Positions 26,288 through 63,205 of a stretch of 64,000 nt of DNA are shown piece by piece; position 1 is the stretch's first letter; every line of letters begins with the position of its first letter. The position numbers and the translations under genes are program-made. The stretch is from NCBI GenBank assembly GCA_002269645.1, contig NIVC01000151.1:1-64000 (forward strand), written 5' to 3'. This DNA comes from Macrostomum lignano. Its lineage: Eukaryota. A model generated the notes under the pieces. That model was not told the DNA's origin. It ran no database searches and was given only the letters and a program-made list of their open reading frames with translations.

Positions 26288-28657
26288 CTAGACTGGCCCG
26301 TCACGTCGGAACTTCTTCTTCGCAATGTCTTCAGGAAGTCGGTTGACAATGGCCATCTCCGCAGCCTTTCGCTTGATCACCGCCTCAGTGATTCGCTCCG
26401 CCTCTTGCTCCCTTCGCTTGCGAATGCGCTCCTGCTCCTTGCGAAGGACTTCGAGCTCTCTGTCCCTCTCTTCAGTCTTCCGCCTAACCTCGTCAAGCAG
26501 TTGGAGCGCTGCAGCCTTCTCCTTGATTTTTTGTTCAATCTCCTTCTCCTTGACGTCTGTCTCGTTCTGCAGGGTGCTCAGCTCCTTGCTTGCCTTCTTC
26601 TCGGCTGCGACTTCGGAAAACACCATCCCCGACAGCTTCTGGGACCGCTCCCGTTCCTCGGCAGCCAACTCGTCCCTTAGCCGCTGACGGTATGCCGCAT
26701 GTGCGCTGGCACACATGTTCTGAAGCGCCGGAGTGACGGGCAACGTCGCAGCAGTCCACTGCTGAACATCCAGGCACGATCGGGTGACAGTAAGAGCTTT
26801 GACCGTGAACGGCGCTAAGCTCTGCCGCTTCTTCGTGATGGTGTCTCTCAGTTGGCTGAACACCCGCTCAACTTCAGCGTTCCCATGGGGCAAAACAAGG
26901 AGTGCTCGTACTAGTCTCATCAGCAGAGGACGATTTCCAGCGTTCAAAACGGACTCCCAGAAGCCGACGACGTCGCCGGACGGGGCAGAGGTAGACACAT
27001 CCTCCTGGTGAAGACGCGCCTCCACCTCCAGGCTGCCGATCTCGGAGTCGGCGAAAACGCGAGGCAGACGTCGGGCCAGAGTTCCTACCCAGGTCACGTA
27101 GGAGCTGTGACCCTGCTGCTTGGGGTCCAGCATCTGGCACGCAGCGAGAACCTTGTTGCCGAGCGGAAGATATTCCTTAAGCTTCTGAGTGCCAACTTGG
27201 CAGAAGGCCTTCATGCCAGCAAGGCACACTTGCTGGTCCTCAGCGGAGAGGTCCACGAAAACTCGCTTCGCTGGCTCACCCATGCCAATGCTGAAGGGCG
27301 CGAGCCAAACAGTGGCGTCTGTCAAATCTACCTTCCATGGTCGGTGAGGCAGCTTCGTTGGCTGCACGAAGCGGAGCAGCCAGCGCTTCACTAGGTCCAT
27401 CAGCTGGGAATGAAGGCAATGAATCTGAGTTCCTTCCTGCTGAAAGAGGAGCTCAAACCGCTGGAGAGGCTGCAAAACTTCGGCCAGAAAGTTCAGAAAA
27501 AACTCCGTCTTGGGGTCGCGCAGAATCTTCTTGATCTCCGCAGCATGGCTTCCGGCTGTCTTCACGTTGACCTCCGAGAAGTACGACACAAGTGGCTGGT
27601 ACAAATGAAGCAACCGCTCCACGACGGGAAGCACCTGGAGCCAGCGAGTGTCCACGGGTCGGACAAATGCCAGCTTCTTGATCTGGGTGAAGCTCTCAGC
27701 AAGGGAGTCAAACCGAGCTTGCTCAGAATGGCACGACTTGAAGTGGCTGTAGACATCCCGGACCAACCGTTCAGCAGTCACTCCAAGGTCAGAGGCTCCA
27801 CAGGCGTACTTCGCCACATTCGCCACGTGATGCAGGGAGCAGCCACCCAAATCGACCAAGTTTGGAAAGCCGTCGTTGCACAGCCGAACAATGGTGCCAC
27901 TCTTGGCACCTCGCATTGCATTGCAGCTGTCGGACATGACAGCGATGCATTTGCTCTTCTCAAGTCCACACTCCGAAGTTGTCTGGCAGACGGCAGATGC
28001 CATGTGCTCAGCAGTCGTTGAAGTCAGCTCGGGGAGGTCAATGCAAACGATCTTTACTCCCAGTGACGATCTTGGCAAAAAGCGAGCGACAATGCCTAGA
28101 TACTTTGCTCCCTTGTTAGCCTCGTCGATTTGAAGCGAGTACCAGTCGGAAGTACGAAGCTCTTGGAGCACTGTTTCTCGGACATAGGGAAACAGCGCGT
28201 CCGTCAGCATGTAACGGATCTTGCTGCCGTGCAGCTGCATCTTGGCTGGGATCTTAGAGTCCGGACAAATTGCGGCGAGGTCCTCAGCCAGGTCGGATTC
28301 CGACTCAAAGCTCCGTGCCTTGAGCACGACTCTAGTGACGCACCGTATCTCGGCCACCCTCACAGCGCTGCTTGCCGCGATGTTCGAAGTCGAGTTGGCT
28401 TCTTCGACCTGCTCCTTGCTCACGACCAGCAGAGGAGCGCAATTCCTCCAAGCAGAGGATATTTTCTTATGCTTGGTGGAGTCTCCGTGGCTTTTTAGGT
28501 TAGTCAGGCCACTGTGAACTACAAAGTCTTTGTTGCACCATGTGCAGTTCACTTTGTTGCTACCAGCCTCAAGAACTTTTGCCCACATGCCGATTTTGTC
28601 GCCATTTTTATCGGCGTGTTGAAGCCAATCATCATTCCACGGAACTCTCTTGCTCAT
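26288..28657 (-). CDS. hAT-superfamily transposase, uninterrupted ORF (~790 aa from MSKRVPW; 831 aa from the first ATG at 28783)
   Basis: BED-like CTWC...SH...KH finger, YSLQIDE (D), AVMSDSC (D), GCSLH (CxxH), DTRW, HGNAEVERVFS (E, dimerization region), then an E/K/R-rich coiled-coil tail. Confidence 0.9.
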   Translation of the reverse strand: MSKRVPWNDDWLQHADKNGDKIGMWAKVLEAGSNKVNCTWCNKDFVVHSGLTNLKSHGDSTKHKKISSAWRNCAPLLVVSKEQVEEANSTSNIAASSAVRVAEIRCVTRVVLKARSFESESDLAEDLAAICPDSKIPAKMQLHGSKIRYMLTDALFPYVRETVLQELRTSDWYSLQIDEANKGAKYLGIVARFLPRSSLGVKIVCIDLPELTSTTAEHMASAVCQTTSECGLEKSKCIAVMSDSCNAMRGAKSGTIVRLCNDGFPNLVDLGGCSLHHVANVAKYACGASDLGVTAERLVRDVYSHFKSCHSEQARFDSLAESFTQIKKLAFVRPVDTRWLQVLPVVERLLHLYQPLVSYFSEVNVKTAGSHAAEIKKILRDPKTEFFLNFLAEVLQPLQRFELLFQQEGTQIHCLHSQLMDLVKRWLLRFVQPTKLPHRPWKVDLTDATVWLAPFSIGMGEPAKRVFVDLSAEDQQVCLAGMKAFCQVGTQKLKEYLPLGNKVLAACQMLDPKQQGHSSYVTWVGTLARRLPRVFADSEIGSLEVEARLHQEDVSTSAPSGDVVGFWESVLNAGNRPLLMRLVRALLVLPHGNAEVERVFSQLRDTITKKRQSLAPFTVKALTVTRSCLDVQQWTAATLPVTPALQNMCASAHAAYRQRLRDELAAEERERSQKLSGMVFSEVAAEKKASKELSTLQNETDVKEKEIEQKIKEKAAALQLLDEVRRKTEERDRELEVLRKEQERIRKRREQEAERITEAVIKRKAAEMAIVNRLPEDIAKKKFRRDGPV

Positions 28658-29454
28658 GTCAGGGATAAAAGTGCAGGTGCAGCTGATGTCGCTGTCGCTG
28701 GAAAAGTGAGAAGAAATAGTATTGTGATGTAGCTGTATAGCCTGTGGTAGAAAATAGAGAGTGCAATAATAACAGGATTCCATTCCATAGCTATGACCAC
28801 CAGCACAGGATTAATGATTACATCTACGACATAACTAGCAATAACTAGAGATACATGATAATGATATCAACATATGGGCCTCTTGACAAACCAAGCCAAA
28901 TAATGCTAACGCTAATGCTTAGAATGCCAAAGCTAATGCTTAAAGTGATAATGCTAATGCTATTGATAACGCTAATTTTAATGCTACTGGTAGTTTCATG
29001 GGGAAATGGAACTGTAATGCTACGCTACCGGTAATTCCCCAGGGAACTCACGCCTTCTTTCGTCATCTCCTACAAGGCGCAAACATTCAAAACAAAAAGC
29101 TATTTTTTTTAAACTACAGCTTCTATTCTTGGGTGGTCTTACAGGCTAATGGGCTTCTATGCTAGTTTACTAGCTAATACAAAAGAAGCTCCAGAGTCTA
29201 GCCAGTGCTGCGTTGTCTCATGCATGTACAGTAATTCGTGGGCAGGAAATAAGTTTAAAATCACAACCATGCAAAGTTCAATGGAACGGAAATCTTTAGC
29301 ATTAAATGTATTTTTAAAACCTATTCAGTAACAATAAATTCAGACATTCACATGCGACTATGAAGGTAAAAATAGTTATGGAGGTACAGAACACCACGAA
29401 GCATAACTATTCCAATGGGTGCCTGGAGTTTAAATGTTCTAAACAAAAAAAACT

Positions 29455-31583: not shown

Positions 31584-36308
<4,725 letters not shown>

Positions 36309-45400: not shown

Positions 45401-48400
45401 TTAAGCTGAAGCGCTGTCACTTTGGTAATAGTTTTTGAAGAAATCTGGCTTGCTCGTGTCGAATCCCCTGGCAGAGAGCTCCTCCGGATCTCGGGAAATC
45501 GGCACCAGAAAGGCGGGGCCCAACATGACGTCAGCGCTGGAGAAGGTGGCCCGCGCGATGACGCCCTCGATGCTGGTCACTCCGGAGGGCCCGATGATCA
45601 CGCGAAGCTCGGACCGACGCGCCAGTGGCTGAGTACGGCTCATGTAGCTCTCCAGCTCCTGCGGCAGATGGCTGGGCAGTTTCTTCCGAATGGCCGAGGT
45701 ACTCGCAGGAATGCTCGTGCAGCTGCTCAGAAAAGACCGCTGTGCTTCTCTGGCTTTCTGAAAGCAATCTTCTGAATCTTCTGAATCTTCTGGATCTTCT
45801 GGAACTGCGCATTCCGAGCAGACATTCCTGAAGTCTCGCCAGCTCCGGCTTCTATCCGAGACATCATCAGATGCTTGGAACTCGAGGTTAAACTCAGCCT
45901 CTGCTGTCTTCATTAACTTCTCAAACTCCCGTCGTGATTTGTCAATACTCGGTAAAATAAAGTCGCAGTTAAGCTGAGTGGGCACTGTGTCCATTGCCCC
46001 CCGGATTTCTGCCTCGGCCGAGCGGCATTCTTCATCGAACTTCTGCCAATCCGGATCGGAGGCTTTGGTGCCTCCCATTCGTTCGCAGGCTGTGGCTGCA
46101 TCAGAGTTGAAATCGATTGCAGCTGACTGTTGGGGCTCGCAAAGGGCCCTAGTTCTTTCGGTGCTCGAGAATACCTGAGCTCCATTCGGGGAGCAATTTT
46201 CTTCAGACAGTTGAAAATACTCAATGCTAGCAAACTCGAGAGTTATTGCAGAAGATTCGGCTATTCTCATCGAAATGCCTCGGACTGGGTTTGGTTTTGG
46301 AAAGCTTGCGTGCGCATCAAGTTTTATCTCAGCGCTTATAAAATCTTCAAAAGATTGCTGGGCGCTGCTATTTATCTCAACCGTACCAACCAATCCGAGA
46401 TGCTGGGTGTACTTTCCATTGTTTCGCTGCAAATTTTGACAGTCCAGTTTAATTTGGGGAGCTTCTATTGTGTATTCCTGTAGCGCAATTGTACCATTGT
46501 TTGCTATCAAAGAAATCGGCTTGATGGACGTCAGGCTGCTGTTGCTGATGCTGATTGATGAAGAAGATAGGGTTAAACCGAATACCAGAGCAAGTTCAGT
46601 GCTTCGAATATCCAATTCGAGGTTAGTGCTCAGCCAGAGGAGCTCTCTGCACTGTAAGTTCGATTCACTGAGAAAGCAAATCAAGTTTTTTGTATTCAAA
46701 TTCGAACAGTCTATTTGCAGTTGCTCAAACTTGCAGCTTTTTGCACACTGAAAAGTTGGCATGATTTCGGAGCGTACGAGAAAATAATTGGCTGAGACTC
46801 CGGACTTCACTGAGATTTGGCCTTTGGCACAGGCTGTCAGTTGTGAGCTCACAGTCGTGTCCTCCAAGTGCAAATGTCAGAGCATTCTATTCGAAGCGAC
46901 TCGCTGACTGAAGTATGACTGTCGATTCTGACGCATCTTGATGCTATTTGCAGGTTTCCGCCAATCTGGCATCGACTGAGGTGCGCATTGCTGGCCGCGC
47001 TTATCGAGGATGTCGAGGATCCGTCCTGTACGTCTGCGCCCGTCAGCGTCAGGCGATGGCTCTCCAACTTGAACCAGCTAAGCCTTGGGCTCACGAGTTC
47101 CAGCGTTGCTTGCTTTCCGAACGACTGAAGACACTCTGTGAACTGACAATCGGCAATTCGCAATGAGCCAGACACAAATAAATCGCAGCTCTTGGACACC
47201 TTCGCCTTCTCGATGAATCCGGTGCAGCAGCGTAGTGTCAAGGATGCACATAACACTGGATCTTTCCATTCGCAAGACTCACAGTCAATAGTCACATCTA
47301 AGTCAAATCGGTTTAACTCCGTTGCTTTGAATGTACGGCACTTTAGTATTGATTCGCCATTGAATATGCAATAATCGCCGAGTAAAATATCCCGAAAGTC
47401 CAATATTTGAAAGGTAGATTCCGTTACGACACTTTGAATCTTTGCGATAGCTATGCAATTGTATTCGCATGGGACTTCTGGCGAAATAAAAACTGACCCA
47501 AATTTAGAGTCTGAGATCCACACGTCCCTTACTTCAGCTATCAGCTCCTGCTGAACGCCTGTTCCATCAGCTAGGACCAGAGTGTCGCATGAAATTCGGA
47601 CTCGATTCAATGAAGAGTTCAGCACGGACAGATTTCGCACAGAGCCAATAAGAACATGGATGAATCCTGCATTGATCGCACAGTTCAGAGGATCTGCGTC
47701 CAATAATAGCTCCGGGGCGACAAAATTATCTAGCTCAATCTTATTAGCGGGCAAGACAACGGCTTTCTCAACCGTCACCCGAGCAAGTTTGAATTTCTGG
47801 GGTTTCTTGATCACTTGCAATCGAACGATTCGGATATCACTTACACAAACCGATGCTGCTTCACCGCACGTACTCGAGTCAGAGATCACCATAAGCTCTT
47901 TAGAGTATCCTTCATTCTTCTTGTCTGGATCTCTGCCATCTAGCTGAAGCCTCCTTGCTTGTACTTGCAAGCGATTTTGAACCATTACACCGCGTATTTC
48001 CGCCTTGATGGCTTTGAGCAGGAGGTTCGCGATGAACGCGCAACCAGTAACTCGTGCCGTACCAGTGACTTCCGCTTGCACTTCCTGAAGACAGCAGTCC
48101 AAAAGCTTCAGTTCCCGAGTCTTCGTCCAGATCTGTGCATGTTTTACCTCCTTGAGTTCACAGAATTCTGAGTCGCTAATTCGGATTTTATCAGAACTTG
48201 TGTCGGACACGCTCACGATGGGGCTCTGAATATCGACATTCGCTTTGACCATGCAGCCCTCCAATCGGACACGTGCGTGAGCCCGAATGATGCCGAGGTT
48301 AAAGACGCACTCCATCAGGCGAATTTCTCTTCCGGCAGCATCTATCAAGTTGATTCTCGATATTGTGTCCAGCAACACAGTGGGTCCGGGCTCGGTTTCA

Positions 48401-51400
48401 GCAGCTCGAATAAAGAAGTTTTTCTGGAGTCCGCACGTGGTGGAGATGCAGCAGCGCCGACACTGGGATGTAATCTGACCAACTTCAGAGTCACTGACTG
48501 CCAAAATGCCTTCTGTCTGCACCTGTAAATTATGCACACTGCAGTTTGATTTGATTCGTACATCACCCGAAATGTTTTTAAAGACGGCATTTTCCAAAAC
48601 TTCTATGGAACTAACTACCACGAAGAGGGAATTCAAAATGGTCAGCTCTTCTGCCTGTAGTTCCATTAGCCTCACTCTCAGCAGCCCGCATTCAGCGCCC
48701 CGAATAACGACAGAGCATGTGGCGAAGCACTGAGAAACTCGGGCTGAGAACACAGCTGTCAGCTGCAGATCCGACAGACACTGGCATCCGGACACGCACA
48801 ATCTGCCCGACTTCAAATGACTAGGGCCGGCAGAATTGAGGTCAGAAACGAACAGACGGAAGTTCCCCGTGTCTATACTTAGACTTCCCACTATGATTTG
48901 ACGAAGTGCTGCATGGCCTTTGGCGGCAATGCAAGCACCGCCATTAACGATAAGTTTACTGACTTGCAGTGAGGAATCAGTCAGCAGATTTAGTTGCCCC
49001 AGCTGGCAATCTTTCAAAGTAGTTGAGCCTACAATGACAGCATCACAGGAATTCGTAATCATCAGCCTCTCCAATTTGGTATTTCCTCCTGACAGGATCA
49101 TGAGAGAATTTGCGCTGGAATCGGACATTGTGAGCATGCGACAGAAAATCTCCATGTTCCCCTCCACTTCGCACGTTCTCACTGTAGATCCCACTGAGCA
49201 GTGGCGAAGTTTCATTGAGCCCAGGTAACTGCAAAATGAATGCGCGGCTTCGGACCAAGCAATGAGATTATCTGAGACACTTGACTTTGACAGGCGGAAG
49301 CATTCGTCAGCATCTGCATAAATCTGCTTTGCCTCTGTCTGGAACACGCTTAACTGCTTGCCCCTGAAGAACAACCGAACAAATTTGCTTTGCTTTGAGG
49401 CAAGTTTCCGGCACAGAGCCACGAAATCATTACTGACCATCGAGCTCTCAATGACGATTTCACCTTTGCCCGGACAAATTACTCGAAGCTCCGAAAGCAT
49501 GGTGCCTTTAATGCTAACGCAATTGGAACATACGACCATCTTTTCAGTAGCGTAAACATTTATTATTGCGAGAGATTTTCCGCTCACGCAGATTGCAGTT
49601 CCGAGGTCTGTCTTAGCCGTATTGCCTGAAATCTCCAAATTGTTGCCTGAGCGAGCCGTCAGGTCCATAATACTGGAGTCGCTTATTGTAATGGTTTCTG
49701 TAGCAACAACCTCTAATGTTCTCGCCGATAAAAAGGAAGCCTTGAAATCTGAGCAAGCCACAGATATATCTTGTGCTTTGAGTTGGTCAATGCTCAGTGT
49801 CTGGTGTACTCTGCATTGTAATTTCTCAAGGTGGCAACCGGCAGTAATAGTAAGCTCATTGCAAACATTAGCTACGAAAATATTATGCACTTTCGATGAT
49901 CTGAGTAACAGGTTGCGTGTAATCAGACAATGCCAATCGACAAAAGAGCACTTCAGCGTCTGGCAAAAGTCGCTCGAAACAATGCAGACTTTTATTTTAG
50001 AAGACTCCAACTTTATCCTTCCCATGCCGGATTTCTCAAAGGCCAGCAGGTGCGCATGCTTTGTAAAAATTAGCTTCGCATTAAATTCTTCTGTACATCT
50101 TACCTCCAGTGCTTTGGTAATTATACTGTTTTCTATACTTCCTGATTCAGACAGAAGGTGCATTTTCCAGGCAGCTGCGTTAGTCACCGTGGCATTCACA
50201 GCCGAAATCCAAACACCAGTCTCACCAAGGAGTTCGTCAATCACCAGACTCTGATCAGTCGACATCAGCATGGTCTCTGCAGACCAGATTCCGTGTGCTT
50301 CGATTACTCCACCCCTCAGAGTGACTGAGCCCTCGCTTGATGTCAAGAATCGAACTCTCAATTGTTCATCCGCTAAAATGTGCACATCTGCAGTGCACAC
50401 AAGCCAAGTTGTCAGCTGTTCGGACCACAGCTGAACGCGGACAGCCTTGATGAGGACTCCGTCCTTTACCGATATGGACCCATCGCAACGCCAGAATTTG
50501 CACTCGTGCATTATTTTCGCCGCTTCTATTCGAGTTGGCCCCACCAGACACAGCCAGTGGCTGCGTTCGAAAATTCCTTGAAGCTTTAGCGGAAGCCAGT
50601 CGCTGTGGCATAATTCTTCCCAGAAGGCGATTAGTTCTTCCTCTGGCTCAGGCGAGCCTTCTCTGACCGCAGTAGTGAGCTTCGCGACTAAACAAACAAA
50701 TTCATCCATTGAATTTTGCTCAGGGCTAGAAGTCCGGATTCGTTTTAGCGTCTCTGCCAACCATTTAGTGGCAGTGGAGACGAGCTGTGCACACCGCTTG
50801 TGATCTTCTAAAAACATTTTTACCGATTCGAGCACCATGAATTCAAATTGCTTTCGCATCTCGCTGTTTGGCTGGGGGACAGCTGTAGAGTTGGCACCCA
50901 GGCATTTTTCAACGTTTTCACGACTCGCGCTTTGTTCGCCAACTTTAGATTCGCCTGTTGTGCACACGTGCTCAGCAAAGCCGAAGTGAGAAATGTTCTT
51001 GACTGCTATTGTGGGGCTGTGTAGTTCGGCATATATAGACAACATGATGTAGCAGTTCAGCTGCAATGAGCTTTTTGCTGAAATTATCGCTGGGTAGAAC
51101 TGATCCTCGCTGCTCGAGCACATGTGCATCTGAGCGGTAGCATCGAGTCTGACATCTTTTGCACTCAACGTTCCCTGATTGTGCAGCAGCTGAGATGCAG
51201 CAACGGACAGCGATCTAAAGCAATCCACCCTCCCGGTCACAACAATACTTTCCGCTTGACAATCAATGCCACCCGTATCGTGTACGGACGCCTGAAAGTA
51301 AATGAATCTGCTTCTTAGATTAAAGTTACCGCAAAATTGTACTTTGCTGCCTAGTTCAAAACTGGCGTTTTTCCAGGCGTGAATTTCAAGTGTATCAATG

Positions 51401-54400
51401 TTGCGAATCTCGGAACCAGTTTGCAGGGTGAACTCCTGAGCACAGATTTTTACTTTAGCAGTGCTCACTTCATAGCTTCCCACTAGCGATTCGTCGAGTA
51501 CAACGCCCTGAGGGCAAATGATTTCAGTTTTTTTAAGAGCGACCTGCTCAACGTTTTTTACAATGAAGCGTGCCTGGTTCAGCTTGACTTTGCTGGTCTC
51601 CCAGGACAACCGGCGCACAGATTTTATAGCCATTAACTCAGACACTGAAAGGGTTGCAGACTTAAAATTGCATGTACCTTCGCATCCCCCAATTAGCAGA
51701 AGTTTCCCTAAATCAATTTCGCTCTCCGGCAGAACCGTGGCAGTTTTGAAGAATTCGATCAGCATCAGCGATGGCTGATTGCCGTGAACGATGCGACCGC
51801 TTATTGTGCATTCGTTGACATGCAAAATGAGATTTGTCGAGCTTTCACCTCCGAACTGAATCAATCCACGACAATAAAATTCATCCGCGTGTACCACTAT
51901 CGCGGCACGGTCTTCATCTTCCAAAGAAGCGAAAAAACTGCCTTCAGTCACGACTTCCTTTGCCAGAATTGTCACGTGTCTCAGACGCAAGAGGCGAAGA
52001 ACGGCCGCATCACAGAGTAAAAGTCTACGAGCTCTCACAAGGCAGCTGCTTGCCCCAACGAACTCCGCATTGCCACTAATCTCCAGTTCAGTCTCACAGT
52101 TTACCAGAAATTCTCCGCACACGCTTTGCTGGCTTTGAACGGTCAAGTCCTGTGAAATCGACAGCTTCTGCACCATAATCTGGCTTGGCATATCCATTTC
52201 AGCGGCCATTTTCAGCTCAAGACTGATTTCAGACCCCATAAATTTGTTGCATTTTAATTTTGACCCTTGCTGACCTTCAATTACAATTGCTTTAGCATTT
52301 CGGTTCTGCCGGTCGTTTACGTGGCTGATTAACAAACAGCCCACCGTTATTTTCTCCAGTTTCGACACAGTCAGCTTTATCTCCGAAGCAGACGGGGACG
52401 GCTGAACGAGGAGTGTGTCGCAAGTGACGCTTCGCTGCAGTTCAATTGATTCAGAAGCTCTTAAGTGAAGAAAAGTTTGCTCAGGCGAGCACACTTTTGA
52501 ATGAAGTGCTACGGACCCTGACAAGCATTGGAAGCTGGCGCCGTTCATTGGAATTTGCAGTTGCAATGGCTGGCTGTGAGATTTGGCGTGGATATGCAGC
52601 ATATTAGAATTTACTGCTGTGCACGAGCTGCGAACCAGCTTGTACATGGCCCTCGAGGTAGCAGCTTTCCTGTGGCCCTAACCAGGCAATAAAGACGATT
52701 CCATGGTCTGATGCAATGCTCCCAGCTGAATTATCAATGTCTCCGGACTCGATGATTAAATCCGTGTGGCTGTGAACAGCACCAAAATTAGCTATGAAAT
52801 GTGCACTGATCACCAAGCTTCCGTTAGCGGACTTCAATTTAGTATTCGACGATATTGTAAGATGCTTTCTTGTCAAAACTGAAATGGAGTCATGTACTTC
52901 AAGGTTTCTGTCTAGCTCACAATCACTGTCTAAATCAATGCATAAGGCCTTCATTCCACTTATCATTCCTTTGTTAACAAATCGGTTTCCCCTTATGTAT
53001 ACAGACGCTCCATGCTCTTCTCTTGTCTCACGACCTGTTTCACCTTTCTTGCAAAGCTTCAGGCTGCCTTGGTGAGTGAATTTAGTCCCGATGAAGATGC
53101 TCAATTCGCGAGTAAAAAACTCCCATACTGATCCGCTTTGTGTTTGAGCTTTGTTTAACACGATTTCGATGCTATTCGCGCAATATTCTTGACTACACTG
53201 TGGAGGACACAGCAACTGGCTCTTAGGACCAAAGTTCACTGTTGCAGCAGGAATGACAATGCCCGCGCACTCCATGCTGCAGTTTAACTCTACGTCAGGT
53301 CCAAAGCCACAGGTTCGAAGCCAGGAATGTACAACAAGTGGTCCTTCAATTATTTTAATACTTCCTTGCAGCGAAATATGACCAGCTGGACTATAAATGA
53401 CACCTACCAAAGACTCCATGGCCTCAACTTCAGCCTGAAGCGCAAGCTGAGCAAATGCGCAGACAGTGACTCGGTAGCCACCCAGCCTGCCAAACACGGA
53501 CTCACTTGGTCTCCTTGTGGTAATTTGAAGCTCAGCTTTGTTCTCCTTCTCAGAATAAGCAGCCGCATTTATACTCTGTGAGAAACTTTCAATATCCATT
53601 GAGAACTTCTTGAAGCTGTTGTATATGCATCCAATGTTTTCAAGACTACCTACTACTCTTAATGAACCGCCATTCACTAACCACAATTCTGCCCCTGCTT
53701 GGACTCTGCATTTTCCAACCTCGAATTTATTCAGCTCTTCTATCTTGACTTCTCCTTGGACATTGAGCCTACCGCGGCACCAACCGCTGATTGACCCACT
53801 TTTCCATACAGACCTTTCTTCGACAAACGCATCCCCACCAATTTCAAGATGAACTTTTGCACCCAGAAACTGGCTGAGGTTGGCAACATCCTCACTAACA
53901 AGACAGCAGATACTCTGTGACTGGTATTTTCCCTTACTTTTTGCCTCCCACTTCAGGAGTATCGCGTTCCTATTGAGTTTATTCTTTTCAGCGACACCCG
54001 GTGGATTCGGCGCAGTTCCCAGATCAGCAATCGCCTTTCTGAGCTTCGCAATGGCGCTTTCACCTTTTTTGTCTTTGAATGTAGGATCAGCCCCAGAAAA
54101 TAGCAGCTTTTTCACTGCTGCAGAATCACCTGTGGACGAATCGATCAGTTGCTTGTCGGCGTCTCTCGCTTTCCTTTCAGCCTTGCTTTGCTTGCCAGCG
54201 TCACTGAGGTATCTTGACACACGAGCTGCAGACTCCTTGCTCGATACTGGAGAGCGAATCTGCTTTGCCGAGATTTCTATCTTGTGTTCAGCAAATACGA
54301 CTCCAACATTTGTTATGCCATCAGTACTGATCAAACTTACTTCTTTGGCCTTTTTATGCCGGTCCGAATATCCGATTTTTGCATCCATTTTTACTACAAT

Positions 54401-54790
54401 ATTTCCATTAACTCGAATGGAAAGGCTGCCATCAGCTTCCTCAGTTGAACAGGGAAGCGGCAAGATGCTGCCAAACACAATCAGGCTGGATGACACCTCC
54501 CGGATCGTTGATTCGCATAGCAACTGCGAGCACTGAACAACTGAGCTTTCTGCCACCACAACTTCTGAAGAAAGAAGTTTTATTTTGGACCCTCGCATGC
54601 ATCTAGATGAGATATTAATTCCCTTTGTGGACTCCAAGACCAATCGGTTAAATTCCTGCTTGCAGTCGGCCACCGTGATCTTTGTCGAACTAATTTTGAT
54701 ATTATCCGAGATTGTCATGCCTAATACTGCCAAAGACACTTCTCTTCTTTTTTTATTTACTTCGACATTGCAGCTCCATTGTTCCTTCCT
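45401..54790 (-). CDS. Giant exon (~3,130 codons) of an uncharacterised beta-solenoid-like protein with FHA-like motifs and one ankyrin-like repeat
   Basis: ORFs 52604-54850, 46849-52647 and 45401-46873 overlap by 44 and 25 nt and join by single-base frameshifts, the second in a T run (ATT TTG needed, ATTTG seen). A strong minus-strand acceptor TCCTATTTCCTTTGCTACTCCTTTCAG precedes 54790 in phase 0. The central 1,932-codon frame is stop-free. Confidence 0.85.
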
Positions 54791-56018
54791 CTGAAAGGAG
54801 TAGCAAAGGAAATAGGACGATTCTGAATTGAGATGACACAGCATACGCACTACACATTAATCTACAAGGGTATAGAGAGACGGTTAAATGCAGCACGAAC
54901 TCACTGTTTACAAACTAAAACGCAAATCAAACACCCTTCTTCTACATCCCACGTGTAGATCTGATCTGGAGCGAGTGGGTATGGGGAGTAAAAAACACAA
55001 AGAACTCAAGGTCTGCATTGACGAATTTTGATTGAACACAACCGCGTCATCTTATCATATACTGGGAGCTATAGAGCGCCCGTTCTATAAAACAATGCAA
55101 GTTGAAACGCTCGGCGGAATTGCAGCACACAGGGCGATCAGGAGAATCGCAAGCAAAGAGAAAACTGCTCACTGTTCGAAGTAGTCCCAAACTAACTTAT
55201 TGTCCGCTCACAGCGGTTTGAGAATGATAGAATCGCATCTCAGTATTTGGTTACTCAAGCCATCTAGCGCGATCTCATGTCTATTTTGGTGAAGGTGGAA
55301 GATGGCAGGGAACGAAAACATATTCTTGGTACAGATACTTTCTAGTATGGATAGCTAAGGACTCTTCATTTGCAACGGCGCACCGTGAGCCGAGAACTAA
55401 AAAATGGCGCATAAACTCCTATTTCCCGGGAAGAGAGGAATGACGTGTGTAGACAATAGACCAAAAAGCATGTCTGGCCACCGTATTGCACTTGAGTCGC
55501 ACCTAACTGTTCCTCAGTAGTTTTGTTTGAAAATTCACTTGGAACCTTAATGGAGAAAAAATGGAAGATAATTCGTTTTTTCATTAATAAGATGAGGAAT
55601 GAGCGACTCTTGCCTCCCCCGCTGTCCTTGGACCGGCCTGCAGCTAGGAGCCTGCTATACACTGCTTGCACTTGTTCAGGACGATTTGCAACGCGAACCA
55701 CCACCAATTGCGCCAGTGCAACACGAGAGAGTAAAGTACGCTCGTACAATACAAGCCTTATGCATCTAGGCTAGCTAGCCTCTAGCCTCAAGCTTTAAGG
55801 AAAGGTATGAATAAGCCGACTGGCATCACAGGATCCTATATACAAAAATGAGTTGTCTGTATGTATGTGTGCTATAGATTTCAGAAAAATAATTGACTAA
55901 AATTATTGTTCTGCATCTAGTGAGCTTGCTGATTACAGTGAGCTTTTGACCTAAAGTACAGGCGGCACCTTGAATTTGAAAATGATGTAAATCAAAATCT
56001 CTTCAAAAGTGGTCTTAC

Positions 56019-56240
56019 CTCCTCATGGCTCCTCCTAAACTTGACAAACCATTTTTCGACTTCCGCGTGGTTTGTCTTTTGCTTCTTGCTCGCTTCTGTC
56101 CATCTACTGGACGAAAAAGAAGGAGGTCCTTCCAAATCAAAGACGAGCACACTTTCCAGGCTTCCATTCTGCCTTGTGGATCTTTTGTTTTTGACTAGAA
56201 AGCGAAAATGGTGCTTTAAGTCGTGCCTGTCGTCGTTCAT
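56019..56240 (-). CDS. Putative first coding exon (74 aa) of the giant minus-strand gene
   Basis: ATG at 56240; the ORF reaches GAG|GTAAGA after exactly 74 codons (phase 0), matching the phase-0 acceptor at 54790. Intermediate exons are not excluded. Confidence 0.5.
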
Positions 56241-57322
56241 TTGAAGTTTTAGAGAAAATATGTCAGAAAATCTTATCTGACAGTAGATTCATGCACCTGT
56301 TAGGGAAGGAGGTTCTAGGAATCTAGACAACTTCACTTATTGTGGCTCAGCTAAGAGGCAGAGTGCATGCAAATTCACTATACGAAAAAATTATCCTTTC
56401 TTAAAAGGTGAGAAAGTTTCATCTGTACCTGCAGTCGGTCTACGCTCGTACTGTTCAACAGAAAGAGAAGTTCAGTTTTGTGTGCTCATGGACCCGAGGA
56501 GGCGGGCCATTTCTGCGTACATTTTGCAGTGTATTACACTATAATTGCGTACTTACAGTGCGCTAAATTTCTAACCCATGCTGTTTGTTTTTGCAGTTAC
56601 CTTCTACAAGGTACTAATTCTTGCACCATCGCAAATATGAGATAAAGTGGACTGGTAAGTAAGACATTTATAAATATAAAACATTATAAAAAAATTCTCG
56701 TTTAATCACTGCTTAAAAATCTTGATCCTGGTTGCTATACACGTCACATGCCCAAAGGTAAGAAAGAAACGTTATTGCTTTGTGCAAGCATATAATGTAC
56801 TCGCATGTGATTTGAATTTATAACTGAAGCTCCAATATGGAATTTGACTGCATACTAATAGCTCATAGGCTGTTGGTCACTGTGATTTTATTGCTTACAA
56901 AAAAACTACATTTTTTATACATTAAGTTTCAATGCGGGGATTCAAACAAACTACTGCAATTGATAACTTGTCAGACCAGTTGACTAGAATTAAACCAGTT
57001 AGTGTCGAGACTTCCCACCAAAGTCCCTTCCTTGGGGTCCCATTGGATAAAAAGGATAAAATAAGGATTTTCGTAAGCTAGAATGAACTGGCTCTAGAAT
57101 GAAGCTCGAAGGTCAGCTCCAGACCAAAGCGCCTGCTATCGATGGCTTACCCTTCTCCAGTAGCGAATGTGGGCAGCAATCAGGGTGTGGAAGCAAACTT
57201 CTCGTTAACGAGGTACGAGCTCGTAGAACGTGGAACATACATTCTCCATTTTTTGCTGCTTTTAGTGTCCGTGCGTTTTTTGATTTGCTTCAATTTAATA
57301 ACAACTGCATTAACTTTGCAGC

Positions 57323-60300
57323 ATGGGCAACACCGGGAGCAAGCTCTGTAACGACACAGAAGAGGACTGGAGCGTGGCAGCGAAGTACAAGGTGATAGGA
57401 GTTGGTGCTGGATCCGAGCTCATCAATTTGCCATCTGGTAGATCAGTTCATTATGACTACGAAGGTCTACCGGTTAACATTTACTTCAAACACGGAATGC
57501 ACGGTAAACACGAGACCATTCAAAACCCAAACATGCAGTCTTGGTGCAATGGGATCAGAAACAAAGAATGGAAGCTGGATTCACCGGCAGAGGGATTTAT
57601 TCATCTGAGCTATGACGGCAAACAGGAGGCAGAATATAAATATGAAACGAAGTCTATGTTTGCTGACAGGAAACGCAGAGAGCGGGAGCAAAGAATGCAA
57701 ACAGCTCGAGAGCAGCTGAAGCAGAGTGACAGAGAACGGACACTCTTTGACGAAAGAAAGATAAAAGAGCAGAAGATCAGCAGGATAGGATCCTAGAAGA
57801 AAACAGAAAAAAATGGGAGGCGTGGAATTCAGAAAGAAGCAGGGCATTAAACGCATTCAGCCGCAGAGAAGATAAGTTCAAAAGAAGGTGCCAGGAGATG
57901 CAAAAAGACAGGTTAGGCAGGCAGGCTGAGAGTTCTTCCCAGCAGAATAAGAATCGAGAAAAGCTTTTCTCTCAACTGCAGAAGCAAAAGACAGACTGGA
58001 AAACTAAAGGCCAACAGGATTTTCTGGAGGAAAAAAAAGAGGTGGAAAAGATTCGAATGGAAAGACTGGAAAGCTTTCGGCACCAAAAGGAGCGGATTAC
58101 GTCAGAGACAAGTGCAAGGTTTAACAGCCTCAATGCGGAAGCTGATCAACACAGAGCTCGTCTGCAAGCGCAGTTTAAAGAAAGGAAAGGTCGCTTTCAG
58201 AGCGAGATGCAGAAGAAGCAGATTGAGATGGAAGAGCATAGCTTGGAGATGAAGAAGAGACTGCAGTCGCAGCAGGAGGAGCTTGAAAAAGGAAGAAGAG
58301 AGTTCGAAGCTGAACTAGCTGAAAGGGAGGCCGATATCGCCAGAAGAATTGAAGAGCAGCGAGCAAAGATAAGGAGAAATCAGCAAGCGTCTGAGAACCT
58401 ACAGAAAACAGAGAAATTTGGACGGCAAGTGGCAACAGCAAGGGAAAACCATAGAGCAAAAGAAATGCAGAGATTGTTCAAAGGCTTGAGAGTCTCGATA
58501 CAGCATGTGCGCGGCAAGTGTGCAAAAGACTATGCAAGCCTTGGAGTTTCCGATGCTACTGTTGCAGATATCAGGAGCCAAATAGATAAAAGCATTGAAA
58601 ATGCTGTCGGAGATGTTTTTACCCGTCTCAAAGAAGCAAGTCAGAATGCGAGTGGTCAAAATGCTTTGAGAACTGTAGAAGCCGTTTCAAGATCGCAATT
58701 CCTGAATCATTTTCGTAGTCATTGGAAGTCACGAATTCCTCAGCCCAATAAAGAGAATCAAATGGCGACACACTTGTCGCTTCTTAAGCTTCTAGATGAA
58801 GAGTCGGCTGGCCAAGTGCTAGACGCTGCAAACAAGGTTCTCATAGAATTTTGCTTTCCGAAAACAGAAATCGACATGGTGTATTATGGCTTGCTGGTTT
58901 TGCTTTTTTTTAAAGAAAAATCCGCTGAAGACCTTTTGAACGAAGACGAGTTGGATGAACTTCTTCATCAGTTCCGTGACACAAATTGTGCCATACAACA
59001 TCTGGATAAGCTGCTAATGGCAAACAATCAGGATGAGACTAATCCTGTCATAAAAATTCTGCTGAAGCTACTCTTAGTGGCTGAAGATATTACTCGACTC
59101 TGGCCTGTCCAGAAAGCAGACACCGACTTGAAGAGACTTCGATCCGTCGTGACAGCAATGCTGAAAACTGCTGGCATCGCTGACTATCTGGATAAGAAAT
59201 CGGACACCGAATGTGTGGTTGAGCTCATTCTGTCAATGCAGCACTGGGATTCTGCAAGCACGCTCAAGCTAATGGAGCTCATTCACTCTAGTGACTCGAC
59301 ACCTGATCAAGTAAGACAGGTCGTCCAGATGATGATTTTGAGCCGCTGCGATTTAAAAGGTCTTCTGGATTCCAGCGAGACTATTTCAAAGGCCACCATT
59401 GAGCGACTTGAAAAGGATCAGGCAGCACAGAGGACTCTCGGCGAACTTCTAGCTGAACTTAAGGAATCAGGAGGATTTGAAGAGGATCAGCTTTTCAAGC
59501 TTGAAGATGTCGTCAGTAAAACCGCGAAATATTTTGATTTGTCCGGATTTGGCAAAGCAAAAAAACTATCGCCGAAAAGCTTAGCAAAATCAAACTATGG
59601 GAGCGTGGAAAGGAACCACCATTGCACAAAATTTTGATTGATCTGTCAAAGGCAGTGAGAAAATGTAAAGGATATCTTCCGAGGAACACACAGCTTCTCA
59701 GTGCTGCTGCCTTGCTCAAAAGCTCTGCTAGCAAGAAATTCGGACAAATTTTGCAGATTCTGACTGGCGAAGGAAAATCGTGCATTGTGGCAATGACCGC
59801 CGTCGGACTTCTGCTTCTCGGGAGGACGTCAGTTGACGTCGTTGCACCCTCTGAAGTTCTGGCTGAAAGAGACTGCCAAGAATGGCATGATTTTTATAAA
59901 GAATGCAAAGTTACCGTTAGCTGCAACATTAATCATAAAAAACCAAAAGAGTGTTATGAGTCCAAAATAGTGTATGGCACGGTGTCTTCATTTGCAGGTG
60001 ACGTTTTGCGGCACGAGTTCCAGTTTAAGGAAATTCGTGGCACAAGAAGCTTCGACGCAGTTATTGTGGATGAGGTCGATTCACTGCTGCTCGACCAGGG
60101 AGTGCAGCTAACGTATCTTTCTCAGGATGTGGGAGACATGAAAATTCTGGACCCAGTTTTTCCGACGACCTTTAGATCCCTACTTACTTTCGGCTTTAGT
60201 AAAGTTATTGGGTACTTAAAATCATCGACAAAGTTCGGAGCGGTGGCGAAAAATATGAGTTCAGTTGGAAGTAAACATTATTCCAAAGCTGGATCTTTGG

Positions 60301-63205
60301 TCACAAAGTTGGTTGGAGAAAATACTGTAAAAGTGCTCAAAGGTATAGTAGACAATCCCGTGTTTAAGTTTTTAGCAGACTTTGCTGTAACTGATGCTCA
60401 AAGACGGCTCATTGACAGTTTAATTTCTAAGTTAAAGAAGAATGTTGAAATTGATATCGAGGGAAAGTGCAACGAAGAAGCCCAGCGAGGAAGGCTGTAC
60501 GACATTGTTGTTCGAATAGCAGCTCCCATGTGCGTGCAGAAAAATCAAGCGACGGAAAAAATGAATGTATTAGATTTCTCCATGCTTACTCCGGAACTGC
60601 AAACCAATGTATTGAAGGCACTTAAAGAAGCCACGGAAGAGGCAGCACACAAAGTTCTGAACGATGCAGAAGCGATGGAAAAGGTCATGGATACAATAAA
60701 GTCATATCTGAGCAATTTAAACTCTGAATTAGCAGAACACTTTAAAGGGCTCCTAGTTTTCCTCAGGCTGGCAGCCGTAGCGGTGGATGCTGCAGCCATC
60801 GGAGTGCAGGCTGAGAACTTGAGAACTGTCGTTGGCAGCATTGTAAAAAAATATAGATTGTTTTTTAATTGACGGAAGCGACGATTGGGAAATCAAGTAC
60901 GACCCTAATCTCAAGCTAAAGGAAAAGAATATGAAAAATGTGGAGCAACTCAGCCAACTGACAAGCAAAGTCGGGCAGCAAATGCGGTCGCAAACCAGCG
61001 AAGTAGTCAGTGCTATACTAGAGGATTATTTAAGAAAGAGCATAGGAGACATGACAAGCCAAGCCGTAGATCAAGCCAAGAGAACTCTCTCGAAAACATT
61101 ATCAACTGCTAATAAGCAAAACAAGATGAATCATTCCTCCATGCCAAAAAAATACACACAGCAAGGAAAAAAACCGAGGAAGCCTAACGCATCAAAGGAC
61201 ACCAAAGTGGAGTTGTCTGGAGATGGCATCAGATTAAAAAAAGCAGGATCAGCTAAAAGTTAAAACAACAGATGATGACTTCAGTTTATCGGTACAACGC
61301 AACGACACTCAATTAGGCATCACGCACGGATCCATAGGAACGGAAGCCAAAGTAAAAAAGGGAAAACATAAAATAGCAGCAAGAACCAATGAACAAGAAG
61401 TTGCGTTAACCCTAGGCCACGGACAATACGAAGTCGAGGCCGGCGGAGGCGAACAAACCAAGCAAATCGGGATATACAAAAAGGAAAAAGAAACCAAAGA
61501 AGGAGCTCTAACAAAAAGAAAGTCCACCTCAAGACAAGGAATACACCTATCTAAGGACGAATCAAAAACCAGTTTTGCCTTTAAAACAGAAAATCAAACT
61601 ACACACAAAAACCCAAATCACAATAAAACTGAAAGAAAATGCGTAAGCGCAGGACTCCAATTCGAACAAGCTGGCACCAGTGTCGAGCTCGCGCAGTCGG
61701 ACGAGAAACGACAGGCCGAGTCAACTAAAGACGGCGACAGCAAAGAGCGCTCGAGTAAGCAAGAATCTAGCGCCAAGCTCGGTCTTGGACAAGCTGGCGC
61801 CAGTGTCGAGCTCGCGCAGTCGGACGAGAAACGACAGGCCGAGTCAACTAAAGACGGCGACAGCAAAGAGCGCTCGAGTAAGCAAGAATCTAGCGCCAAG
61901 CTCGGTCTTGGACAAGCTGGCGCCAGTGTCGAGCTCAAGGACTACTCAAGTAACATATATATAGGACGCAACACTCAAAATCTATGGTAAATGTTTTGAA
62001 GGCAACTTTTCGCCGAAAAATACACTACAGAGATAGGAGGTTTTAATTTTTTTAGCACAAACATTGTTATTGCTTTTGATAAGAGACAGATCCAGTGTTC
62101 ATCTTTTGATATGTTGTGCCTTTCTTATTGCTCTATCGATATTCATAAAGCTTTTCGTTCGGAAATAGTTTTAAAGGCAGGTTTCACCGGAAAAACACAC
62201 TACGGAGATGGGAAATTTCACGATTTTCAACACCAAAACAGTGATTGGGTCTCTCAACAGTTTCAGAGAAAGTCTTTTTGTGCCTCACATGCTGCTCTAA
62301 CGACGCATCAATCGATTTTTCATGTTAAATTGTTCTTGTCATTGTTTTAAAAGTTTTTTCAAGTGACAGACCAATTTAACATGAAAAATCGATCAATGCG
62401 TCATTAGAGCAGCATGTGAGGCACAAATAGTGTGATTAGGACTTTCTCTGACACTGTTAAGAGACCCAATCACTGTTTTAGTGTTGAAAATCGTGGAATT
62501 TCCTATCTCCATAGTGTATTTTTCCGATGAAACCTGCCTTTAAAACTATTTATAAACGAAAAGCTTTATGAATATCGATAAAGCAATGAGAAAGGCACAG
62601 CATATCAAAAGATGAACACTGGATCTGCCTCCTATCAAAAGCAATAACAATTTTTGTGCTGAAAAAATGAAAACCTCCTATCTCAGTGGTGCATTTTTCG
62701 GCGAAAAGTTGCCTTCAAAACATTTACCACAGATTTCGAATGTTGCGTCCTTCTACTTAAGTTGTCCTTGGTCGAGCTCGCGCAGTCGGACGAGAAACGA
62801 CAGGCCGAGTCAACTAAAGACGGCGACAGCAAAGAGCGCTCGAGTAAGCAAGAATCTAGCGCCAAGCTCGGTCTTGGACAAGCTGGCGCCAGTGTCGAGC
62901 TCGCGCAGTCGGACGAGAAACGACAGGCCGAGTCAACTAAAGACGGCGACAGCAAAGAGCGCTCGAGTAAGCAAGAATCTAGCGCCAAGCTCGGTCTTGG
63001 ACAAGCTGGCGCCAGTGTCGAGCTCGCGCAGTCGGACGAGAAACGACAGGCCGAGTCAACTAAAGACGGCGACAGCAAAGAGCGCTCGAGTAAGCAAGAA
63101 TCTAGCGCCAAGCTCGGTCTTGGACAAGCTGGCGCCAGTGTCGAGCTCGCGCAGTCGGACGAGAAACGACAGGCCGAGTCAACTAAAGACGGCTACTTCG
63201 GTTAA
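57323..63205 (+). CDS. Eukaryotic SecA-DEAD-like ATPase-domain protein (~1,680 aa reconstructed), interrupted by a foldback insertion
   Basis: MGNTGS start right after an intron (57213-57321); long E/K/R/Q coiled coil; PRNTQLLS...QILTGEGKSCI...VDVV...LAERD...IVYGT...FDAVIVDEVDSLLLD. ORFs 57323, 57898, 59622, 60931 and the ATG-less frame from ~61240 link through four single-base shifts in A runs (~57763, ~59560, ~60848, ~61238). Confidence 0.82.
61665..63193 (+). repeat. 123-bp (41-aa) coding tandem repeat, ~5.6 essentially identical copies, split by an insertion
   Basis: Unit ASVELAQSDEKRQAESTKDGDSKERSSKQESSAKLGLGQAG; ~2.2 copies before 61936 and ~3.4 after 62770. Confidence 0.95.
61936..62770. 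mobile_element. 835-bp foldback/MITE-like non-autonomous DNA transposon with an 8-bp TSD
   Basis: Starts CAAGGACTACTCAAGTA and ends TACTTAAGTTGTCCTTG. Arms 61936-62344 and 62360-62770 are imperfect inverted repeats around a 15-bp spacer. TSD GTCGAGCT at 61928-61935 and 62771-62778. Confidence 0.94.

Follow-up and report, generated by a model that had tools for sequence, protein, structure and literature searches.

A giant beta-strand-rich protein gene of macrostomid flatworms, possibly encoding a solenoid-like scaffold

Introduction

What kind of protein does an animal genome encode in a single exon of ~9.4 kb, and to which proteins, if any, is it related? The question is raised by a 64,000-nucleotide stretch of the flatworm Macrostomum lignano (contig NIVC01000151.1, positions 1 to 64,000; hereafter the window), which carries on its minus strand a giant exon of ~3,130 codons. 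A prior examination of the bare letters, which we call the sequence-only reading, had described this exon as encoding a single-exon protein of ~3,200 aa with motifs like those of filamentous haemagglutinin (FHA). It envisaged a long beta-helix stalk tipped by a C-terminal effector domain, after the fashion of the bacterial CdiA proteins. Here, we report that the region 45401-54790 is a real protein-coding gene for a giant, beta-strand-rich protein, that on present data its family is conserved, under selection and restricted to macrostomid flatworms, and that it is not a member of the bacterial protein group to which it had been likened.

Results

The coding region and its single relative

The coding region on the minus strand spans exactly 45401-54790, in agreement at both ends with the sequence-only reading, though the protein comes to ~3,130 aa rather than the ~3,200 aa then estimated. 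Three open reading frames (ORFs) of 748, 1932 and 490 aa make up the gene, and two small indels, near 52622 and 46874, join them. The corresponding stop-free stretches of the minus strand run from 54856 to 52607, from 52677 to 46852 and from 46876 to 45404 (2.25, 5.8 and 1.47 kb), whereas in the background of the window stops occur every 50-100 nt. The first and third stretches lie in the same frame and the middle one is shifted, with each adjoining pair overlapping by 25-70 nt only. From the 5' end of the gene to its stop codon, the parts are as follows:

54791-54800, minus strand: polypyrimidine tract and AG (ctcctttcag), a 3' splice acceptor in phase 0 and a likely spliced-leader (SL) trans-splice site; the same tttcag stands in phase 0 at ~4513-4522 of L002, the stretch that bears the relative described below
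52622-54790, minus strand: giant exon, segment 1 (~aa 1-723), with an N-terminal beta region, then an ankyrin (ANK)-like helical insert, then beta sequence bearing N-x-G motifs; collinear with the relative
52620-52624, minus strand: frame switch 1, ...GSQLV followed by CTAVNSN..., with one extra base or two missing; the relative reads through (YLEGHVNAAAQLVCVATNSKSLH)
46876-52621, minus strand: giant exon, segment 2 (~1,915 aa), mostly beta with a central helical insert, as delimited by the ORFs and the alignment
46873-46876, minus strand: frame switch 2, ...ECSDI followed by LHLEDTTV..., with one base missing at a short TTT run near 46874; the relative is continuous (SLRIDCASELHIGSLKV)
45404-46873, minus strand: giant exon, segment 3 (490 aa), in which the last beta region gives way to a variable linker, an acidic helical module containing Cys and, at the end, a C-terminal domain, as delimited by the ORFs, the alignment and a structural model
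45401-45403, minus strand: stop codon, from the ORF analysis

When the last 1,200 aa were searched exhaustively with phmmer against 1.84 billion representative proteins, exactly one relative was recovered (E=9e-192), namely PAA55970.1, the hypothetical protein BOX15_Mlig022560g1 of Macrostomum lignano from assembly GCA_002269645.1 (Mlig_3_7), to which we refer as Mlig022560. A partial model of 1,318 aa (PAA55961.1/PAA82174.1) falls in the same 90% cluster as this entry; UniProt A0A267E360 is listed for Mlig022560. At the DNA level, on contig NIVC01000490 (L002 4478-14008), Mlig022560 is an uninterrupted ORF of 3,176 codons, of which the public M. lignano models (953 and 1,318 aa, labelled 'partial') cover only the last 30-40%. 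The homology to this ORF is full-length and collinear: tblastn matches residues 17-3138 of the window protein to L002 in one frame and as one high-scoring segment pair with 44.9% identity, and a global alignment with few gaps is collinear from end to end at 46.7% identity over 3,087 aligned positions, with C, W, P, L and G being the best-conserved residues. Thus, the two genes form one family, the members of which are alike in ~3,090 collinear residues at 47% identity, the same inserts, the C-terminal module and the phase-0 acceptor before the ORF. Mlig022560 differs in possessing a 17-aa tandem repeat in the linker, which the window copy lacks, and in its flanks, where a USP-type protease lies downstream and no SecA-like gene upstream.

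By the Nei-Gojobori method, the proportion of nonsynonymous differences between the two copies is pN=0.33 and that of synonymous differences pS=0.68, the latter being near saturation, giving a dN/dS of ~0.24; the gene is thus under purifying selection. Word-indexed homology searches with the 3,145-aa concatenation of the window pieces and with an N-terminal 1,200-aa alignment yielded no match; these are weak negatives, the first having also missed the Mlig022560 protein. Scans of viral, metagenome and bacterial-genome (GTDB) DNA likewise contained no relative of the giant protein. Comparison of the window with the Mlig022560 locus revealed neither synteny nor any conserved small downstream ORF. 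Copies of Mlig022560 are present on contigs NIVC01000490, NIVC01002681 and NIVC01002682; one of these (L001) is spread over four frames through indels, yet is 99.86% identical to the intact copy.

The frame switches

The two frame switches pose the question of whether the window copy is intact. Mlig022560 is in a single open frame across both sites, and the corrected frame of the window copy is free of stop codons over ~7.2 kb downstream of switch 1. Further, over 6.5 kb, 5 indels but just 2 substitutions separate the other M. lignano copies of Mlig022560 from the intact one, while a gene adjoining the giant exon in the window shows four frame changes, three of which coincide with A7 homopolymer runs. 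This coincidence points to homopolymer-length errors in the assembly. Since the M. lignano copies differ mostly by indels and the switches of the neighbour sit on A7 runs, we judge indel noise to be common in these assemblies.

The chief alternative is that both frameshifts are real and that the window copy is a recently inactivated pseudogene. In its favor, the two switches fall within 9.4 kb and neither is in a long homopolymer, which speaks against an intact gene, and the adjoining gene is frame-broken too. The long stop-free corrected frame, the A7 runs at the switches of the neighbour, the indels that likewise separate the M. lignano haplotig copies and the overall dN/dS of ~0.24 all argue the other way. 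We consider such inactivation unlikely, albeit deserving of more weight than any of the alternatives to the identity of the protein considered below. Each switch is a small indel, for which an error of long-read assembly is the most likely source; we rate such an error above a genuine pseudogene of very recent origin and regard the gene as probably intact. Introns were also considered at the switches. GT-AG candidates of 19-185 nt exist, but their removal would delete conserved, open, protein-like sequence, and the homologue is continuous at both sites; hence, they were rejected.

The 5' end and the predicted location of the protein

Position 54790 is the first base after the acceptor ctcctttcag. 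In both copies the open frame extends beyond the first in-frame Met, back to the phase-0 tttcag acceptor, and a conserved peptide of the form (E/R)WSCxVxVxK (RKEQWSCNVEVNKK in the window, SPERWSCQVKVDKQ in Mlig022560) follows directly after the acceptor, upstream of that Met. The Macrostomum spliced leader has an ATG at its end (PMC10468722). Because the acceptor is in phase 0, the conservation extends upstream of the first Met and the leader ends in ATG, an SL-donated AUG is the simplest reading of the 5' end. Under this model, the mRNA would begin by SL trans-splicing at the 54791-54800 acceptor and the terminal AUG of the leader would serve as the in-phase start codon. We found no candidate for a phase-0 signal-peptide exon in the 2.5 kb upstream in the window or the 4.5 kb upstream in L002, and no block upstream of the acceptor that is conserved between the two. 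The single-exon description holds in part: the very long coding region at 45401-54790 is there, but its reading frame changes in two places (near 52622 and 46874), and because the giant exon opens behind a splice acceptor the gene is single-exon only loosely speaking.

The window protein displays no signal peptide and no hydrophobic segment of membrane-spanning strength, as the sequence-only reading had noted of the signal peptide; the high Cys content it had remarked on is also borne out (4.1%). This content, along with the presence of Cys among the best-conserved residues and a frame that is open back to a splice acceptor, such that an upstream exon is possible, might suggest Cys-rich structural material destined for secretion or the extracellular space (adhesive, eggshell or stylet), with the signal peptide in an undetected upstream exon. 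However, 40% of the Cys are not conserved, Ser standing in their place in most cases, and each copy has an odd number of Cys; based on these observations we argue for free thiols and a cytoplasmic protein. As the upstream signal-peptide exon and the conserved upstream block were sought in vain, and as the SL-donated AUG accounts for the structure without an extra exon, we hold secretion to be improbable. The sequence features, taken together, indicate that the protein is most likely cytoplasmic.

Domain architecture

From composition and the alignment with Mlig022560, we derived the following layout, in which ~85% of the sequence is beta-strand-rich:

aa 1-200: beta-rich
53915-54247, minus strand (aa 200-310): helical, K-rich, Cys-free insert with one ankyrin-like motif (LLFSGADPTFKDKKGES); helices appear in the model, and LLxSGADP is kept in Mlig022560
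aa 310-1290: beta-rich
52685-53707, minus strand: beta region in which the majority of the hydrophobic-x-N-x-G-x-hydrophobic motifs lie; Mlig022560 retains DIDNSAGSI and the NFG motif
50524-50976, minus strand (aa 1290-1440): central conserved, probably helical insert (..RCAQLVS..DWLPLK..GIFERSHWLCLVGPTRIEA), from composition and a conserved alignment block
aa 1440-2880: beta-rich
aa 2850-2913: variable linker, with an acidic PEDPEDSEDSED run in the window copy and the 17-aa tandem repeat in Mlig022560
45719-46054, minus strand (aa 2929-3040): helical acidic module in which W, C and F are conserved (WxxFDxECRS, NCDF, SWRDFxNxCSxC, DPED), from invariant alignment columns; four long helices in the low-confidence model
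45404-45661, minus strand (last ~85 aa): conserved C-terminal domain without Cys (..RVxIGPSxVTxIxGxI..PAFLxP..), from the alignment; a beta-hairpin in the model

The ankyrin-like insert shows sub-threshold matches to designed ankyrin proteins in the PDB (E 0.03-0.16), and PDB sequence searches with single sequences and profiles produced nothing beyond these. Likewise, no piece of the window protein matches any Pfam or NCBIfam family at E<=1. Fast change is confined to the linker preceding the C-terminal module: at ~13000-13200 of L002, M. lignano has three tandem copies of the 17-aa PISSLTEAAKSPTEAPQ, and at ~45750-45790 of the window the acidic PEDPEDSEDSED run takes their place. The acidic segment (WQKFDEECRS...PEDPEDSEDSED) and the distinct C-terminus (the last ~85 aa) that had been pointed out earlier are both present. 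The interpretation of this C-terminus as a terminal effector domain finds no support: in the Pfam and PDB searches it matches no family, toxin and effector families included, and it is conserved rather than variable, its 100-column blocks being 43-49% identical to Mlig022560, with a drop over the last ~34 residues.

The fold and the favored explanation

Two AlphaFold2 models were obtained, one for the last 1,200 aa from a 3-sequence alignment and one for the first 883 aa from a single sequence. Both are strand-rich, and in their best parts (pLDDT 55-75) 10-11-residue strands alternate with 3-residue strands at a spacing of 19-20 residues. In Foldseek searches against the PDB, the top 50 matches, none of them significant, are almost all solenoids: the ectodomains of TLRs, which head the list, and of other leucine-rich repeat (LRR) proteins, HxuA, EtpA, IgA1 protease, EspC/EspP, the HK620 tailspike and a fucoidan lyase. 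Autocorrelation of BLOSUM scores along the sequence peaks at lags of 7, 13, 19-20 and 27 in both copies, with z up to 5, though the peaks are weak and the two sequences are not independent; locally, hydrophobic lags of 19-26 recur. As these lags are what an irregular three-sided coil of ~20 residues would give, they suggest such a coil. All five motifs that the sequence-only reading had quoted (GSLENIGCI, RFVNKGMISG, FIANFGAVHS, DIDNSAGSIAS and LHNQGTLSA) are present. Its FHA-like N-x-G pattern is indeed enriched, hydrophobic-x-N-x-G-x-hydrophobic occurring 8 times in 3,145 aa against 0.6 expected, a count reached by 0/300 shuffles, but 8 occurrences are few for a protein of this length, the homologue has just 4, and no internal sequence repeat is detected.

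By the general yardstick of a beta-solenoid, stacked parallel coils of 18-25 residues in a confident model or structure, the protein offers a strand spacing of 19-20 residues at low model confidence, the lag peaks and Foldseek neighbours that are solenoids without being significant; these favor a beta-solenoid without establishing the fold. The long beta-helix proposed in the sequence-only reading is thus compatible with the strand-rich models, the neighbours and the ~20-residue periodicity, though its fold is unproven. Our overall reading, which we rate as an even call, is that of a macrostomid-restricted, intracellular, SL-trans-spliced gene for a giant solenoid-like scaffold. In this proposal, the ~85% beta sequence with its periodicity of ~6.6, 13 and 20 residues would form an irregular three-sided beta-solenoid rod; ~2,600 beta residues at ~20 per turn would give a rod ~60 nm long, if all of them coil. 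The rod would be broken by the ANK-like and central helical inserts and would end in the helical acidic module and the small conserved domain. Its most likely role would be to act as a rigid building block or scaffold within a cell structure peculiar to flatworms; the helical inserts and the C-terminal module would then provide docking sites.

Several observations weigh against this reading. The AlphaFold2 model of the last 1,200 aa has a mean pLDDT of 43 and a pTM of 0.35, and that of the first 883 aa is uninformative (mean pLDDT 36, pTM 0.31). The best Foldseek match has an E of 0.07 with TM<=0.2. Neither BLASTP nor hhalign detects an internal sequence repeat, and Fourier analysis of hydrophobicity yields no global period above the shuffle null. 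At the 5' end, a short upstream cis exon is possible. The GC content at third codon positions (GC3) of the giant gene is 0.44-0.54, as against 0.83-0.94 in kinase exons of the same window, a contrast that is unexplained. Finally, a search of the literature and supplements for Mlig022560 or its accessions returned no expression, localisation or phenotype data.

Genomic context

The surroundings of the giant exon are those of an animal genome, comprising a CDK16/PCTAIRE-like exon (176 bits over 115 aa), a DYRK2-like exon and an intact hAT transposase; no tRNA or Rfam matches were found in the window. The transposase corresponds to an intact 831-aa ORF at 26288-28783 on the minus strand with a hAT-family C-terminal dimerisation domain, and might mark a hAT transposon that is active or was so until recently. 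The CDK16-like and DYRK2-like exons (20387-21466 and 33203-35406) have a GC3 of 0.83-0.94, and the giant gene together with its neighbour (45401-61987) one of 0.43-0.54; the contrast might stem from low expression, young age or foreign origin.

This neighbour, at 57323-61987 on the plus strand, is divergently oriented and has ~1,550 codons. Its product starts with MGNTGSK, of the N-myristoylation type, followed by ~450 aa of a K/E/R-rich coiled coil and a bacterial-type SecA NBD1 (Pfam SecA_DEAD 8e-25; Walker A LTGEGKS and a DEVD box), which is unusual for an animal. Elsewhere it has only weak bacterial SecA matches, and no SecA-like gene lies within 4.5 kb upstream of Mlig022560. Its frame changes fall at 57751-57793, 59538-59634, 60847-60869 and 61238-61260. 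Two arrays of one 123-bp tandem repeat, at 61666-61936 and 62771-63193, with copies 99-100% identical and open in several frames, lie downstream of, or inside the 3' part of, this gene. Elsewhere in the window, ~100 copies of a 92-bp AT-rich satellite (96% matches) are arrayed over 9.2 kb at 9373-18604. A (TCAG)n stretch occupies 1-618, and there are >20 minisatellites (12-42 bp), several of which lie in GC-rich ORF-like stretches beside the kinase exons.

Discussion

The resemblance that first drew attention to this gene was to the bacterial FHA/TpsA/CdiA proteins, i.e., secreted beta-helix stalks with a variable C-terminal effector or toxin domain. The likenesses are size, beta richness, a distinct C-terminus, the enriched turns of the hydrophobic-x-N-x-G-x-hydrophobic type, a possible ~20-residue coil, and the presence of the TpsA proteins HxuA and EtpA and of autotransporter passengers among the non-significant Foldseek matches. 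What the giant protein lacks are the defining features: neither the window pieces nor the full-length homologue match the TPS domain PF05860 (Haemagg_act), the FHA repeat families PF05594 and PF13332, the three profiles that had been put forward as a check, or any NCBIfam family at E<=1. It has no hydrophobic N-terminus that could act as a Sec signal peptide, and its gene, rather than standing in an operon with one for TpsB, belongs to an animal genome and is preceded by a splice acceptor. There is no VENN motif in either copy, the C-terminal ~85 aa are conserved between the window copy and Mlig022560 instead of being polymorphic, and no conserved small ORF follows downstream. Further, neither the 1.84e9 representatives nor the GTDB genome scan contain a bacterial relative. 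This proposal is, therefore, largely refuted, and we deem it the least probable of those considered; the giant protein is most likely not a secreted adhesin or toxin-delivery stalk. A related possibility is that the giant gene and the adjacent SecA-like ATPase gene are together the remnant of a horizontally acquired bacterial module. The bacterial-type NBD1 of the neighbour, the low GC3 common to both genes and unlike that of the kinase exons, and the occurrence of SecA-like ATPase domains in giant bacterial toxins (PMC8195603) could be cited in its support. Against it stand the lack of a bacterial homologue of the giant protein, the failure of the SecA-like gene to accompany Mlig022560 in the upstream 4.5 kb and the eukaryotic features of both genes (the splice acceptor and the myristoylation-type start), which render it very unlikely.

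Among eukaryotic proteins, the bridge-like lipid-transfer proteins (BLTPs) of the VPS13 type, in which a repeating beta-groove of long amphipathic antiparallel strands forms a hydrophobic channel between membranes, are also giant, beta-rich and furnished with helical inserts, and share the predicted cytoplasmic location; moreover, parts of the low-confidence model have 9-16-residue strands joined by 2-residue turns. A match to this class had been named in the sequence-only reading as grounds for abandoning the beta-helix, but Pfam provides none at the sequence level, with no hit to Chorein_N, VPS13, ATG2, Apt1 or Fmp27 at E<=1. The giant protein also has no N-terminal hydrophobic anchor and weak lag-2 amphipathicity, and its direct, rather than mirrored, lag periodicity and the solenoid-only Foldseek neighbours favor parallel coils. 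At the level of structure a groove is conceivable, the models having a pLDDT of 36-43; the Foldseek neighbours, none significant, are solenoids and not BLTPs. Finally, BLTPs are pan-eukaryotic, whereas the family described here is confined to one flatworm lineage. Accordingly, we give this alternative little credence, about as much as secretion. Right-handed beta-helices of the PbH1/CASH type do occur in animal proteins, such as SHCBP1, FBXO11 and fibrocystin, some of which are cytoplasmic. These helices are short, at a few hundred residues, and are recognised by Pfam Beta_helix/NosD; in contrast, the beta part of the giant protein measures ~2,600 aa, and neither the window pieces nor the full-length homologue carry a Beta_helix, NosD or Pectate_lyase signature, or match any LRR family in Pfam, at E<=1. 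The best sub-threshold Pfam match of the Mlig022560 protein is to Bactofilin (PF04519), a three-sided beta-helix, with an E of 0.13 and 13 bits; this is far under the 27.9-bit cut-off, involves a single ~50-aa stretch and is not seen in the window copy.

Conclusions

Going beyond the intracellular solenoid-like scaffold that we favor, one may entertain two bolder scenarios. The family could represent a new, animal-born class of giant cytoplasmic beta-solenoids without sequence relatives anywhere, its ~60-nm rods building a hard or filamentous structure specific to flatworms (the stylet, which forms intracellularly, or the bristles of sperm, for instance). Or it could be a far-diverged, domesticated descendant of a bacterial TpsA-like protein acquired along with the SecA-like neighbour. 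We offer these as speculation and think it rather improbable that either holds.

The locus also carries lessons for the reading of such genes. Giant, lineage-restricted proteins are usually overlooked or truncated by annotation. N-x-G motifs by themselves are no proof of FHA, long-read indels break up very long ORFs, and a spliced leader that ends in AUG can conceal the true start codon. If the solenoid reading is true, the protein would be among the longest animal beta-solenoids and the founder of a family without sequence relatives. M. lignano, for which RNA interference and transgenesis are available, is a model flatworm in which the gene could be examined directly.

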